A DNA stretch of 64,000 nt from positions 1,736,001-1,800,000 of the forward strand of contig CATNEN010000001.1 in assembly GCA_950097015.1 (NCBI GenBank), read 5' to 3'. Below are positions 9,901 through 36,215 of the stretch, one piece after another; the stretch's first letter is position 1, and each line of letters begins with the position of its first letter. The DNA is from Macrostomum hystrix (lineage: Eukaryota > Animalia > Platyhelminthes). The notes under the pieces are model-generated. The model made no database searches, was not told where the DNA came from, and saw only the letters and a program-made list of their open reading frames with translations. The translations under genes were made by a program, and so were the position numbers.

Positions 9901-12900
9901 ATCAGAATGCTGTTGAGCCTGTCACACCACGCACATGGCGGCTACACCTCATTGAGCTACAGATGTCACTCGGATACTGGCTATCCGGCTGATACGGCCT
10001 CCGATTGTCTGCATAGATTCGGACCTAGGCCCGACTGTGTTAGGCTGGCTAGTACCGGTCATTATGGAGATGGTGAGATGTGAATGAACAGATAGATAGA
10101 ACAGGCTGGGATGTAAAGAGTCTGGTAGATAGAACAGGCAGGCATGTGAAGAGTCTGGTAGACAGAACAGGCAGAGGTGTGAAGAGTCTGGTAGACAGAA
10201 CAGACAGGGATGTGAAGAGTCTGGTAGATAGAACAGGCAGAGGTATGAAGAGTCTGGTAGACAGAACAGACAGGGATGTGAAGAGTCTGGTAGATAGAAC
10301 AGGCAGGGATGTGAAGAGTCTGGTAGATAGAACAGGTAGGCATGTGAAGAGTCTGGTAGACAGAACAGACAGGGATGTGAAGAGTCTGGTAGATAGAACA
10401 GGCAGGGATGTGAAGAGTCTGGTAGATAGAACAGGTAGGCATGTGAAGAGTCTGGTAGACAGAACAGGCAGGGATGTGAAGAGTCTGGTAGATAGAACAG
10501 GCAGGGATGTGAAGAGTCTGGTAGACAGAACAGAGCAGGGATGTGAAGAGTCTGGTAGATAGAACAGGCAGGGATGTGAAGAGTCTGGTAGATAGAACAG
10601 GCAGGGATTTGAAGAGTCTGGTAGATAGAACAGGCAGTGATGTGAAGAGTCTGGTAGATAGAACAGACAGGGATGTGAAGAGTCTGGTAGACAGAACAGA
10701 CAGGGATGTGAAGAGTCTGGTAGATAGAACAGACAGGGATGTGAAGAGTCTGGTAGACAGAACAGGTAAGGCTATGAAGCTAGGTCCAACAAGACTAGAG
10801 TAGTGTTTTTCTAATTGTTTGGCTGCTCAGTCTTAAAAGATATTTCTTTTCTGCTATGAATCATCCCACTTGCTCATTGATCGAACTAATTTCTGAGCAT
10901 CCTAAACTGTTGAATATACATAGCTATATACACGCTTAGTCCAAGAAGCGGAACATGCGAATGTGTGAGATTACGTTTTCAGCTCCAATGCACCAGTAAA
11001 ACTAATTATTCTAATCAGTGAAGCGGTTATGTGTGGTCTATGAGTAGTCTGTACTTGGTTGTAACTAAAAACTTTTTATTGCTCTTCGTAGATACTAGCA
11101 AGAGTTAAGCCTAATTGTAGCTAACTGACATAGCTCAGAATTTAATTAAATTTAATATTTATAGGAAGAAAACTATTTCCAGTCTAATAAACTCCAATTA
11201 AGAATATTTAACGTAACCGAAGACGGAAGTTACTGCCGACTGGTAGTCTAGTAAAATTAAACTGATTTCGCTACTTTTAAAGCCCTTTCGCCACATGTTT
11301 TTGTGTGTTTTTTGCCTGAAAAGCAATGATGATAAAGAGAAAATAAAAAACATTGACGACAAAAAAGGTTTGAGCTAAGAAAAAGGACATACATTTAAAA
11401 AGGTCTGCATAGGTTACATAAAATGGATCTAGATTACAGAAATCGAAAAGAATATAATATCGATAGTGGTTAGAAAAAAATCGATAATGAATTAAGGCAA
11501 TCGATAATGAATCAAAGCGATCGATAATGAATCAAGGCAATCGATAATGAATCAAGGCAATCGATAATGAATCAAGGCGATCGATAATGAATTAAGGCAA
11601 TCGATAATGAATCAAGGCAATCGATAATGAATTAAGGCAATCGATAATGAATCAAGGTAATCGATAATAAATCAAGGCAATCGATAATAAATCAAGGCGA
11701 TCGATAATGAATTAAGGCAATCGATAATGAATCAAGGCATTCGATAATGAATTAAGGCAATCGATAATGAATCAAGGCGATCAATAATGAATCAAGGCGA
11801 TCGATAATGAATTAAGGCAATCGATAATAAATCAAGGCAATTGATAATTAATCATGACAATCGATAATGAATCATGACAATCGATAATAAATCAAGGCAA
11901 TCGATAATGAATTAAGGCAATCGATAATGAATCAAGGCGATCGATAATGAATTAAGGCAATCGATAATGAATCATGCCAATCGATAATGAATCATGGCAA
12001 TCGATATTGAATCATGACAATCGATAATAAATCAAGAAAGTCGCTAATGGATCATGACAATCGATAATGAATCAAAACAATCGATAATGAATCAAAACAA
12101 TCGATAATTAATCAAAACAATCGATAATGAATCAAGAAAAGTGATAATGAATCATGAAAATAGATAATGAATCATGACAATCGATAATGAATCAAGAAAA
12201 TCGATAACAATTTAAGAAATTCGGTAATGATGTAATAATATCCATTCAAATTTAAGAAAATCTATAAAGATTAGAGAAAAGTTTTAATCGATAACGAATA
12301 CAGACTGTAAAACGATCATAAAATCTATAATTTTTACGATTACAGAAAATCGATAGTCGATAACAATTAAAGAATGTCAATAAAGAAAACGAATAAAGAA
12401 TAAAAATCAACAAGTGCGCACTGCACCTACCTGTACATTCAACAAAATTATTTAAGAAACCGCTTTAGATTGATATATAATAAAATATAATTGGCAAGCT
12501 AAGCAATGTATCCTTATCCTAAGTCTATAAAATTTCAGTTGTAACTACACCAAGTAACTACAACACTTGTATTTGCCATAATAATGATAATAATAATTGA
12601 TTACACCTGCCCCAATTGGGTCAGATGTGCAGCCGACAGCACAGCCGCAGCTAATGCGCGGCGCATCTGAAGGCTGCGTACAGCTGTTCAGTCCATGGAC
12701 TGGGGGGACGCCACACCCACCTTCAATTATCCCAGCTGATGCTGGTACCCATTTAACAGCTGGGTGAACTGAAGCAATGCAGAGTTAAGTGTCTTGCTAA
12801 AGGACACAAATTGTTCAGGGGAGTCGGGAATCGAACCCCCGACCTTCAAGTCGTGAGTCCGACGCCCTAACCACTAGGCTACAACCTCTGTGAATGCGTA

Positions 12901-31871: not shown

Positions 31872-32618
31872 CGATTTTGGGATTCTGGTTGTTTCGGGAT
31901 TCGGATCGTTTCGGGATTCTGATAGATTCGGGATTCTGATAGATTCGGGATTCTGATAGATTCGGGATTCTTATAGATTCGGGATTCTGATAAGATTCGG
32001 GATTGTGATAGTTTCGGGATTGTGATAGATTCGGGATTGTGATAGATTCGGAATTCTGATCGTTTCGGAATTCTGATAGTTTCGGGATTGTGATAGTTTC
32101 GGGATTTTGATAGTTTCGGGATTGTGATAGTTTCGGGATTCTGATATATTCGGGATTGTGATAGATTCGGGATTGTGATAGTTTCGGGATTCTGATAGAT
32201 TCGGAATTCTGATAGTTTCGGGATTGTGATAGTTTCGGAATTCTGATAGATTCGGGATTGTGATAGTTTCGGGATTCTGATAGATTCGGGATTCTGATAG
32301 ATTCGGAATTCTGATAGATTCGGAATTCTGATAGATTCGGGATTCTGATAGATTCGGGATTCTGATAGATTCGGGATTCTGATAGTTTCGGGATTCTGAT
32401 AGATTCGGAATTCTGATAGATTCGGGATTCTGATAGATTCGGGATTCGGATCGTTTCGGAATTCTGATAGTTTCGGGATTCTGATAGATTCGGAATTCTG
32501 ATAGATTCGGGATTCTGATAGATTCGGGATTCGGATCGTTTCGGAATTCTGATAGTTTCGGGATTCTGATAGTTTCGGGATTCGGATCGTTTCGGAATTC
32601 TGATAGTTTCGGGATTAT
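31872..32618. repeat. 17-bp minisatellite (gatagattcgggattct)n
   Basis: Tandem array. Confidence 0.95.
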
Positions 32619-33934
32619 TGTAACGAACTCCCTGACTCGAAAGTAACGCTCTGAACTTTATAATATACCCAGCGCTGGTTTCTTGAACAAAACTAAACAA
32701 AACCAAAGCACAATTTTCGCCAACTGTTAAAGAAATATTTTTACAAGTCTGACTCTGAAAGGAAAAGCTGAGAAAACGCCGCAACTATGCTCAAAGGAAG
32801 CTCTAACTCGGGGAAAGGCACTGACTGTAGAGAAAAGTTACTGAGATGTGTTTGACGATTAAATATTTGTGATAGAGAGAGTGAGTGAGTGAGTGAGTGT
32901 GAGTTGACACAACACCAGCTTTATACCTGGGAAATCTCAGAAATTTGGCTTGCAAAACACAAAATGCGTGTGTTTAGAGCTGTATAGCTGTTTTCATACT
33001 CAAAGCGGCAGTTGTGACAAATGCGATCTGAAAAGGAAATTTTAAGAAAAAAAATTGTGTCGGGTTTGGGGCTGGGGTTTGGTCCCTAATGTAAACAGAA
33101 GTCAAATCCAGCAGATCTAAAAATACAAGCATTTATGCAGCCCGTTTTCGTATTTGTTGAGGCCATTTTTAAAGACACACGCCATCAAACACCTGCTTGC
33201 CCTACTCTCTCTAACTTTCTCTCTTTTTAAAAACACATTTCTAGTCTGCTTTTTGTTTCTGATTCTCAACATTTTAGTGGCCTGCATCCATAGTTTAGTG
33301 GCCAACAACACCCATACCTCATTCACGCTCTCACCCTATCTCACCCTCTCTCACCATCTGTCACCCTCTCTCATCCTCTGTCACCCTCTGTCACCCTCTG
33401 TCACCCTCTCTCACCCTCTCTCACCCTCTGTCACCCTCTCTCACCCTCTGTCACCCTCTTTCACCCTCTGTCACCCTCTCTCACCCTCTCTCACCATCTG
33501 TCACCCTCTCTCATCCTCTGTCACCCTCTCTCACCCTCTGTCACCCTCTGTCACCCTCTCTCACCCTCTCTCACCCTCTGTCACCCTCTCTCACCCTCTC
33601 TCACCCTCTCTCACCCTCTGTCACCCTCTCTCACCCTCTCTCACCCTCTCTCACCCTCTGTCATCCTCTTTCACCCTCTGTCACCCTCTCTCACCCTCTC
33701 TCACCATCTGTCACCCTCTCTCATCCTCTGTCACCCTCTCTCACCCTCTGTCACCCTCTGTCACCCTCTCTCACCCTCTCTCACCCTCTGTCACCCTCTC
33801 TCACCCTCTCTCACCCTCTCTCACCCTCTGTCACCCTCTCTCACCCTCTCTCACCCTCTGTCACCCTCTGTCACCCTCTCTCACCCTCTCTCACCCTCTG
33901 TCACCCTCTCTCAACCTCTGTCACCCTCTGTCAC

Positions 33935-34330
33935 AATTCAATGGGCAGTGTCCTCTCTCCTCTCTCCCGCTCTCTCTCTCCCTCTCTCCCTCTCTCTCTC
34001 AGGCCAGCACCGGCGTCTCGTACGACCGAGTCAGTGCCACGGAGTTGAGTGAGTATGGATTGAGTTGCGGGGCGCTGCCGAATCGATTACGATATGTTGA
34101 GATTGAAAGCTGGATTTGAACAAGCGCCTATAGCCTAATGGCTAGAGCGCTAGGCTAGACTCTACTGATGAGCTCCAATAAGAGCGAAACGCGTCTGGAG
34201 TTGCCTTGGTTCGAATCCTGATTTCAATTTTTTCGATACATATCGGAATCGATTCCAACATTAGATTTTTGAAATTCAATGGGCAGTGTCCTCTCTCCTC
34301 TCTCCCGCTCTCTCTCTCCCTCTCTCCCTC
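33935..34330 (+). mobile_element. Retrozyme-like / SINE-like element: 338-bp unit plus 58-bp terminal redundancy, carrying Pol III boxes and a hammerhead ribozyme
   Basis: 33935-33992 is identical to 34273-34330. Interior has A box TAGCCTAATGG (34131-34141), B box GGTTCGAATCC (34208-34218), a T6 run (34228-34233), a hammerhead, and nested inverted repeats. Confidence 0.7.
34152..34206 (+). ncRNA. Type I hammerhead ribozyme
   Basis: Stem I aggc-ua-gacucua (34152-34164) pairs with uggaguu-gccu (34196-34206). Core CUGAUGA 34165-34171; stem II gcuc/gagc with loop caauaa; GAAA 34186-34189; minimal palindromic stem III acgcgu; GUC cleavage triplet 34193-34195. All conserved core nucleotides are present. 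Confidence 0.88.
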
Positions 34331-35227
34331 CCTCTCTCACCCTCTGTCACCCTCTGTCACCCTCTCTCACCCTCTCTCACCATCTGTCACCCTCTCTCAC
34401 CCTCTGTCACACTCTCTCACCCTGTCACTCTCTGTCACTCTCCGTCACCCACTCTCACCCTCTCAGGCCCTCTCTCACCCTCCCAGCCTTTTAATTTGTT
34501 ACCAGAACACTGAAGCAGATTAACCGGTTTTTCAACGACACTAAACCGAGTGACTAAAATCGTCTTATATGTATCTGATGAGCTAGTTAGTAGAAGCTTG
34601 TAAATACTATAGTCCCATAAATTATCCTACCAATCCTTAACCATTAGGCAAATTATTAATTAAACCTATGACAAACTGACGCACCTGGCTAATCGTTTAT
34701 ACCGCCACCTGTATTTGCAGCTTCTCTACGCTTCGTGTGTAGCCGTTTAGAGTTGCACGGATACCATTTTGTGTGTCTGTCTGTCTGTTTTCATTGAAAC
34801 TTACTGATGAGAATAACCGATGCCGTCGTCTGTATATACATATACGCTGGGCTGTTAAAACAAAAACTAGGCTTGCTTAAGTTTGCCAGATACGCAGCCT
34901 TGCCTGTGTGTGTGTGTGTTTATGAATTCTGAACAAAACAATCGTTATTTTGGCCGGTACTAACACGCGCTATAGAAGAAGAAGAAGATAGTTGATGAGG
35001 CGTCAGCCGATAGCGCTAGGCTCAGGTAATGGCATTAACAGACTATAATGACGCGGCGTTGCAGTATTATAGAACTTCTGTGTATAGTGTTTTAACAGAT
35101 TGTGTGGCGTTAACATTTTTCAACAACGCCCGTAAAAGCAAGCAACTTACAATGCGCTAGACAAACAATTTTATTCCATGGGATTGCATGGGTTTTGCGG
35201 GGGAAAAATACTCATATGAAATCATCG

Positions 35228-36215
35228 AGAATAGATGTGAGATTTGGGGAGAATAGATGTAGGATTGGGATTGGGGGAGAATAGATGTAGGATTGGGGGA
35301 GAATAGATAGGAGATGGGGAAATAGATGTGAGATGGGGAAATAGATGTGAGATAGGGTAGAATAGATGTGAGGTTAGGGAGAATAGACGTGATGTTAGGG
35401 AGAATAGATGTGAGGTTAGGGAGGGTAGACGTGATGTTAGGGAGAATAGATGTGAGGTTAGGGAGAATAGACGTGATGTTAGGGAGAATAGATGTGAGGT
35501 TAGGGAGAATAGACGTGATGTTAGGGAGAATAGATGTGATGTTAGGGAGAATAGATGTGATGTTAGGGAGAATAGATGTGAGGTTAAGGAGAATAGATGT
35601 GATGTAAGGGAGAATAGATGTGAGGTTAAGGAGAATAGATGTGAGGTTAGGGAGGGTAGACGTGATGTTAGGGAGAATAGATGTGATGTTAGGGAGGGTA
35701 GATATGAGGTTAGGGAGAATAGACGTGATGTTAGGGAGAATAGATGTGATGTTAGGGAGAATAGATTTGATGTTAGGGAGAATAGATGTGATTTTAGGGA
35801 GAATAGATGTGAGGTTAGGGAGAATAGATGTGAGGTTAGGGAGAATAGATGTGAGGTTAGGGAGAATAGATATTAGGTTAGGGAGAATAGACGTGATGTT
35901 AGGGAGAATAGACGTGATGTTAGGCAGAATAGATGTGATGTTAGGGAGAATAGATGTGAGGTTAGGGAGAATAGATAGGAGGTTAGGGAGAATAGACGTG
36001 ATGTTAGGGAGAATGGACGTGATGTTAGGGAGAATAGATGTGAGGTTAGGGAGAATAGATATGAGGTTAGGGAGAATAGACGTGATGTTAGGGAGAATGG
36101 ACGTGATGTTAGGGAGAATAGATGTGATGTTAGGGAGAATAGATGTGATGTTAGGGAGAATAGATGTGAGGTTAGGGAGAATAGACGTGATGTTAGGCAG
36201 AATAGACGTGAGATT
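35228..36215. repeat. 21-bp minisatellite (gggagaatagatgtgatgtta)n
   Basis: Tandem array; a related array in opposite orientation lies at 36908-37490. Confidence 0.95.

Follow-up and report, generated by a model that had tools for sequence, protein, structure and literature searches.

The SINE-like Schistosoma elements Sm-alpha and Sj-alpha, reportedly described by Ferbeyre in 1998 and by Laha in 2000, and the pseudo-LTR hammerheads of Penelope-like elements, which are said to go back to Cervera and de la Pena in 2014 and to Lunse in 2017, are among the described systems that most resemble the repeat presented here. Sm-alpha is, to our knowledge, the sole known pairing of a Pol III promoter with a hammerhead, the two lying side by side. 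In published depictions its promoter comes first and the hammerhead follows (PMC6765202), and tRNAscan-SE recognises its heads as complete tRNA-Gln (PMC2770079). Metazoan non-LTR retrozymes are non-coding units of 150-400 nt carrying one type I hammerhead (Cervera & de la Pena 2020, PMC7229834) and, according to a review, seem to be without promoters (PMC7761336). Dimeric-type hammerheads have been described both for Penelope-like elements and for amphibian retrozymes (PMC7761336; PMC7229834). Penelope-like elements are further characterized by partial tandems, a bias for microsatellites and hammerheads in pseudo-LTRs; in the Athena and Coprina elements, the hammerhead adjoins a complement of the target repeat, and the priming of reverse transcription is attributed to this complement (PMC8557442). 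A 2026 preprint proposes that animal retrozymes derive from Penelope and are non-autonomous (10.64898/2026.07.22.740005).

The family described below bears on the question of how animal retrozymes are transcribed. It was encountered in a stretch of 64,000 nt from Macrostomum hystrix (hereafter the window), where an earlier note had seen a hammerhead placed between the A and B boxes of a tRNA-type promoter and had supposed a Pol III transcript that cuts itself, roughly where tRNA introns are cut. It shares with Sm-alpha the make-up of a mobile, multi-copy repeat of ~335 nt uniting a tRNA-derived Pol III promoter and a type I hammerhead, whose stem II and loop II are similar and whose stem III is very short. 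An intact tRNA head with the ribozyme downstream of both boxes is absent at the locus: compared with Sm-alpha as described in secondary sources, the ribozyme here has taken the place of the tRNA's middle part and separates the two boxes. The earlier note had called this nesting unusual, in agreement with the published accounts, in which the Sm-alpha ribozyme follows an intact tRNA-Gln head (PMC2770079; PMC6765202).

With metazoan retrozymes the family shares dispersed and short-tandem copies, a predicted highly self-paired RNA, hammerheads that are in some cases dimeric, and Penelope-like elements as suspected mobilisers. It differs from them in that its hammerhead sits within a tRNA-derived module that includes an A box, a B box and a T-run, in that most insertions measure 1.0-1.6 units and are not multi-copy tandems, and in its strict insertion into CT-rich satellites through a CU-rich tail. 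With Penelope-like pseudo-LTR hammerheads it has in common the loop-less palindromic stem III GAAACGCGUC, identical in several local Penelope-like families, and with Penelope-like elements generally the partial-tandem insertions and the microsatellite bias. Athena and Coprina target telomeric overhangs, whereas the targets here are internal CT-rich satellite DNA. An exact-sequence literature search for the element found nothing. What sets the family apart is that the ribozyme is nested between the boxes and that a complementary tail directs it strictly to CT satellites; its closest known kinds are non-LTR retrozymes and Sm-alpha.

A 336-nt repeat in CT-rich satellites

Positions 33935-34335 of the window are a single insertion, ~1.2 units long, of a young, protein-less 336-nt repeat (Table 1). 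A partial upstream unit supplies its terminal redundancy, and the same 10-bp minisatellite is present on both sides. The 3' boundary of the window unit is uncertain by ~6 nt because the CU-rich tail blends into the CT-rich target. Two further minisatellites, one built of 17-bp units (GATAGATTCGGGATTCT) and one of 21-bp units (GAGAATAGATGTGAGGTTAGG), flank the locus at 32400-32620 and 35190-36200, and with the 10-bp array they form a satellite-dense stretch around the insertion. A 321-aa ORF at 33154-34119, which passes through the minisatellite, was discarded as spurious.

Table 1. Parts of the insertion and its flanks, in window coordinates
Feature	Position	Strand	Remarks
Host 10-bp minisatellite (CTCACCCTCT/GTCACCCTCT)n	33310..33934	+	5' flank and target of the insertion
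Partial upstream unit	33935..33999	+	Unit positions ~274-336; aattcaatgggcagtgtcc and 44-nt CU-rich tract
Full 336-nt unit	34000..34335	+	Unit position 1 = 34000
Purine-rich arm	34041..34075	+	Partner of the CU-rich tail in the predicted rod
GGAUUUGAAC	34112..34121	+	B-box complement in the rod, with one G-U pair
tRNA 5'-half relic	34124..34149	+	GCGC/GCGC stem around a D-arm-like hairpin with the A box (34131-34141)
Type I hammerhead	34152..34206	+	Stem I, CUGAUGA, stem II, GAAA, ACGCGU palindrome, GUC
Predicted cut site	between C34195 and U34196	+	Hammerhead
B box GGTTCGAATCC	34208..34218	+	T-loop relic; T stem reduced to 2-3 bp
T6	34228..34233	+	Pol III terminator-like run at the tRNA-terminator place; partly paired in the rod
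T5	34266..34270	+	Second terminator-like run, upstream of the tail
CU-rich 3' tail	34293..34335	+	Modal length 44 nt; presumed priming site on CT-rich targets
Host minisatellite resumes	34336..34490	+	3' flank

Across the 220-Mb assembly, the 336-nt family has at least 114 non-coding copies at 82-100% identity. For the 266 nt around the motif, 48 or more matches at 96-100% identity are spread over many contigs; the 31-nt hammerhead core is present 91 times when up to 2 mismatches are allowed, 48 of these being exact, and unit positions 197-219 are found 114 times. Other genomic copies that conserve the core, for which the earlier note had asked, do exist, and the locus is one copy of a mobile repeat, not a discrete Pol III gene. 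As in retrozymes, the repeat is short, non-coding and dispersed in the genome, with a type I hammerhead within the unit.

We aligned 76 non-redundant copies from 65 loci. The unit consists of 292 nt of complex sequence followed by a CU-rich tract of 31-92 nt, with a mode of 44 nt, giving 336 nt. The 3' end falls at this tract in every aligned copy, with ~8 to more than 44 nt of tail kept at the junction, and the 5' ends are scattered (unit positions 1, 17, 52, 61, 85, 98, 107, 113, 126-169 and beyond). An extra partial upstream unit accompanies 13 of 36 full units, up to a maximum of ~1.6 units, and the genome-wide set of 91 cores includes no long tandem arrays. Two hammerheads, 336 nt apart, occur in ~4 of the 36 full insertions sampled, so that most copies would be unable to release unit-length RNA in cis. 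The flanks are almost always CT-rich micro- or minisatellites. Junctions at the 5' side coincide with CTCT or CGTC microhomologies, for instance at unit 161 (CTCT) and 191-197 (CGCGTCT); their location in short C/T patches is as expected of microhomology joining. A constant 3' end, scattered 5' ends and partial tandems are what target-primed reverse transcription would leave behind if its template, multimeric or circular, exceeded a single unit.

Enrichment of 5' ends at U197, the first base of the predicted cleavage product, is weak and confounded by the CT microhomology: one copy is unambiguous, two or three are ambiguous and several have their 5' end at 191-193. The 5' end of one copy in unique DNA (L003, G000:C38:31507767-31511032) lies exactly at U197, as in the predicted 5'-OH product, and this copy is flanked by a direct duplication (locus 1262-1356 and 1822-1916; 88 of 94 bases identical, ~76 nt of unique sequence), which is unusually long for a target-site duplication. 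The family is of too recent origin for covariation within it to be informative: copies differ too little, and the variants that they share fall in loop II and at other unconstrained positions.

Two further loci depart from the common pattern. At one of them (L033, G000:C7:10881669-10884740, minus strand, 1485-1656), unit positions 64-235 stand alone in AT-rich, non-satellite DNA; the copy stops directly past T6 and is followed by AAAA, and it may be a retrocopy of a transcript terminated at the T-run or a product of rearrangement. The other (L041, G000:C38:21522500-21530000) holds five identical 5'-truncated copies (unit 113-336) whose spacing alternates between 1589 and ~685 nt, and appears to be a single insertion that was later amplified within a higher-order tandem repeat of ~2.27 kb.

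The hammerhead and the tRNA relic around it

The core elements CUGAUGA (34165-34171), GAAA (34186-34189) and GUC (34193-34195) stand at the correct spacing and correspond to the general hammerhead core CUGANGA ... GAAA ... NUH. Stem II is a GCUC/GAGC helix of 4 bp with the loop CAAUAA (34172-34185). Stem I comprises 11 bp: 7 bp between 34158-34164 and 34196-34202, a UA bulge at 34156-34157, and 4 bp between 34152-34155 and 34203-34206. Both stems form in the predicted fold, and all these parts lie where the earlier note had placed them. In a permissive Rfam scan of a 251-nt stretch, Hammerhead_HH9 aligned end to end at 38.7 bits (E 1.1e-8), with the stem III loop alone deleted; on a per-genome scale the E-value is 2.4e-6, and scores range over 38.7-42.1 bits. 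The curated Rfam cut-offs are not reached, at 38.7-42.1 against 52 bits for HH9 and at best 31.4 against 34 for Hammerhead_1, which is why a gathering-level scan of the whole window is blank; the absent stem III loop accounts for the shortfall. The Hammerhead_1 similarity that had been foreseen thus exists below the cut-off, and HH9 scores better. The motif exceeds what chance would give: in shuffled sequences the exact 26-mer has an expected number of occurrences of 0.00. As judged from sequence, the hammerhead motif is real yet atypical.

The atypical feature is stem III. The element earlier described as a palindromic 2-bp stem III is the 6-nt palindrome ACGCGU, which has no loop; the palindrome stands, and its closure within one molecule does not. 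Helix III would form solely as a 6-bp duplex between two ribozyme copies, so that the predicted cleavage requires a dimer. The proposal that a single Pol III transcript cuts itself fails for the same reason, as a monomer lacks the loop needed to build stem III.

Around the ribozyme, the A box TAGCCTAATGG and the B box, 66 nt apart, and the T6 run, which begins 9 nt past the B box, were all found as previously reported. They agree with the layout of a type 2 promoter, in which an A box TRGCNNARTGG and a B box GGTTCGANTCC lie less than ~90 nt apart with a T-run downstream, and a spacing of 66 nt is within the range that such promoters tolerate. ARAGORN detects no tRNA in the window and none in 20 SINE loci; the Rfam tRNA model gives no plus-strand match at the 251-nt hammerhead stretch, where the acceptor and T stems of the tRNA-like module do not pair. 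We discounted a tRNA-like match on the minus strand (15 bits, E 1.7), which we attribute to the GGAUUUGAAC arm that pairs with the B box in the predicted rod.

The relationship to tRNA emerges from comparison with other repeats of the same genome. A 20-mer from the A-box region has ~1,900 genomic occurrences at up to 3 mismatches, against 19 and 34 for controls, and these places are the heads of a tRNA-derived SINE. The head of this abundant SINE is GGTTGTAGCCTAGTGGTTAGAGCGTCGGACTCACGACTTGAAGGTCGGGGGTTCGATTCCCGAC, and a conserved core, ...GTGTCCTTTAGCAAGACACTTAAC..., comes after it; a copy in the window (12783-12892, minus strand) scores 28.9 bits with the tRNA model, slightly below the cut-off. 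An nhmmer profile built from 17 heads of the genome's own tRNA-SINE matches 34124-34226 with an E-value of 5.4e-5, covering both halves of the module: the D arm and the anticodon-stem side align with 34124-34156 and the T-loop side with 34208-34226, the ribozyme being an insertion between them. The D-arm 20-mer differs from one SINE subfamily at 2 positions. By this similarity the boxes are tRNA-derived, their source being the head of the genome's tRNA-SINE or its source tRNA. The predicted hammerhead in effect stands where a tRNA would have its anticodon loop, the 3' strand of the anticodon stem, the variable loop and the 5' strand of the T stem, and the 5' anticodon-stem strand is reused by the outer 4 bp of stem I. 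The central observation of the earlier note, a hammerhead between tRNA-type boxes with a T-run at the place of a tRNA terminator, is upheld by this alignment. The supposed cut near the tRNA intron site is contradicted by it, as the cut maps to the variable-arm and T-stem region and not to position 37/38.

RNA fold and the meaning of the boxes

Folded as a circle, the unit has a predicted minimum free energy of -121.7 kcal/mol, whereas dinucleotide shuffles come to -93.2 +/- 6.2 (z -4.6), none of the 200 being as stable. In this fold 70% of the bases are paired, as in the stable and highly self-paired RNA expected of a retrozyme. The predicted structure is a rod in which unit positions 1-121 pair with 208-336: the purine-rich arm with the CU tail, 34081-34110 with 34223-34258 (including part of T6), and GGAUUUGAAC with the B box. 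A knob at one end of the rod is made up of the tRNA 5' hairpin together with the hammerhead. The complementary strand reaches -106.4, with 5 G-U pairs against 11 on the plus strand; the advantage of the plus strand in these model folds points to selection on plus-strand RNA.

We consider it probable that the family is a non-autonomous retroelement of the non-LTR retrozyme or Schistosoma Sm-alpha-like type. Its structural basis would be a decayed tRNA in which the segment from the anticodon loop to the T stem was replaced by a hammerhead, leaving the A box on one side and the B box and T6 on the other. Copies would be transcribed mainly through read-through, since T6 and T5 should halt Pol III inside the unit. 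Two hammerheads, brought together from the few two-ribozyme insertions or from two separate RNAs, would then pair via the ACGCGU palindrome and, to judge from their sequence, cut after unit C196. By analogy with published retrozymes, the unit-length RNA would be circularised by the tRNA ligase RtcB. It would be copied by a reverse transcriptase, most probably from one of the genome's many Penelope-like elements: the insertion pattern is seen directly, and the enzyme is inferred. Priming would take place at nicked CT-rich satellites, through annealing of the CU-rich tail to their AG strand, and would result in a constant 3' end, variable 5' truncation, reading round into a further, partial unit and, occasionally, long duplications of the target. 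With the ribozyme inside a tRNA relic, the two boxes would be parted by self-cleavage and brought together again when the RNA circularises or forms a dimer.

The boxes invite other readings. If they recruit TFIIIC and Pol III, the predicted product is an RNA of ~110 nt, and a stronger version of this idea holds that A box, hammerhead, B box and T6 constitute a working Pol III mini-gene, whose tRNA-shaped transcript of that length would cut itself and be rejoined by RtcB as the main function of the element. The consensus fit of both tRNA-derived boxes, their tolerable spacing and the terminator-like position of T6 speak for such a gene, as does the fact that subfamily-level substitutions avoid the defining box positions while T6 is retained or lengthened; a related SINE head is, moreover, clearly active in the same genome. 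Against it stand the impossibility of stem III in a monomer and the spread of the family, which a transcript without the tail common to all copies leaves unexplained. Nor do the 5' ends of copies accumulate ~12 nt upstream of the A box, the signature that a Pol III start site would leave, and the retention of the B box and T6 could be explained by the rod alone, since both form one strand of it. The putative 110-nt product is of unremarkable stability by itself (z -1.2). We hold the mini-gene to be quite unlikely as the main function. Use of the boxes by Pol III in any form seems doubtful, and Pol III is very improbable as the source of the transposition template, which is disfavoured by T6 and T5 lying between the boxes and the constant tail: a stop at T6 would fall ~60 nt short of the CU-rich tract. 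In a bolder combination of the two ideas, the split tRNA module would be a functional Pol III gene and would link the retrozyme with the tRNA machinery. Its abundant ~110-nt tRNA-shaped hammerhead RNA would serve as the dimer partner in trans, cutting read-through transcripts via ACGCGU, and might present 2',3'-cyclic phosphate and 5'-OH ends to RtcB in a scaffold resembling tRNA halves. This is decidedly unlikely in our estimation; were it true, the module would give a retrozyme an internal promoter and a ligase handle, both of which are said to be absent from other retrozymes.

The tRNA-derived part, the 5' truncations and a simple-repeat 3' tail (the unit terminates in ...CAGTGTCC(CT-rich)) also recall an ordinary tRNA-SINE, mobilised by a microsatellite-tailed LINE that reads the tail, with the hammerhead as a passenger. 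In such an element the tRNA part would be expected at the 5' end; here it lies mid-unit, full copies start upstream of it and often enter a second unit, T6 and T5 separate the boxes from the tail, and the rod fold and the Penelope-type stem III argue otherwise, so that we regard LINE mobilisation as highly unlikely. The pairing of the B box with GGAUUUGAAC in the rod, and the lack of a plus-strand match to the tRNA model, would also suit boxes that arose by chance or as a by-product of the self-complementarity of the rod, with no tRNA ancestry. The SINE-head profile, which spans both sides of the ribozyme, and the near identity of the D-arm 20-mer to a SINE subfamily reduce this possibility to almost nothing.

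Under the preferred retrozyme or Sm-alpha-like reading, a young family of more than 100 copies with a clean insertion signature in CT-rich satellites is a convenient system. It would suit the study of the part played by Pol III in retrozyme RNA, of dimeric hammerheads in cells and of the reverse transcriptase that mobilises retrozymes. Should the boxes be dead relics, the family is merely another retrozyme, with an unusual pedigree.

Penelope-like elements as candidate mobilisers

The 336-nt unit has no ORF for a reverse transcriptase and GIY-YIG endonuclease, and its mobiliser has to be sought elsewhere in the genome. Penelope-like protein matches number at least 134, and one intact Penelope-like ORF of 713 aa combines an RVT_1 domain with a C-terminal GIY-YIG domain. 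Minimal hammerheads of the form CUGAAGA-U-stem II-GAAACGCGUC are located ~230-300 nt past Penelope-like stop codons, and other Penelope-like hammerheads have the same layout with AAGCUU or UGCAUU palindromes. The pattern CTGANGA-N8-24-GAAACGCGTC occurs 152 times genome-wide, against 2 and 1 for controls; ~60 of these places are of the Penelope type, and their stem II sequences covary.

The family nonetheless differs from the local Penelope-like elements in having a CUGAUGA-G core with a 4-bp stem II and a 6-nt loop, in the style of HH9 and Schistosoma, and not CUGAAGA-U; nor does it share an ORF with them or any detectable similarity beyond the core. A BLAST comparison of the unit with 14 Penelope-like loci returned just 13-18-nt chance matches, with no common tail or body. 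We are inclined to see a Penelope-like element as the mobiliser of the 336-nt family, by an analogy of style and not of sequence.

Rfam at E<=1 reports no hammerhead in 13 of the 14 Penelope-like loci, although hammerheads of the CUGAAGA type can be read there by eye. In loci L063-L074, minimal hammerheads (CUGAAGA or CUGACGA ... GAAA and a 6-nt palindrome) were recognised by eye in all four Penelope-like families sampled, and the 3' ends of these elements have a common motif, roughly AGCGAGYTNCYCTACC.
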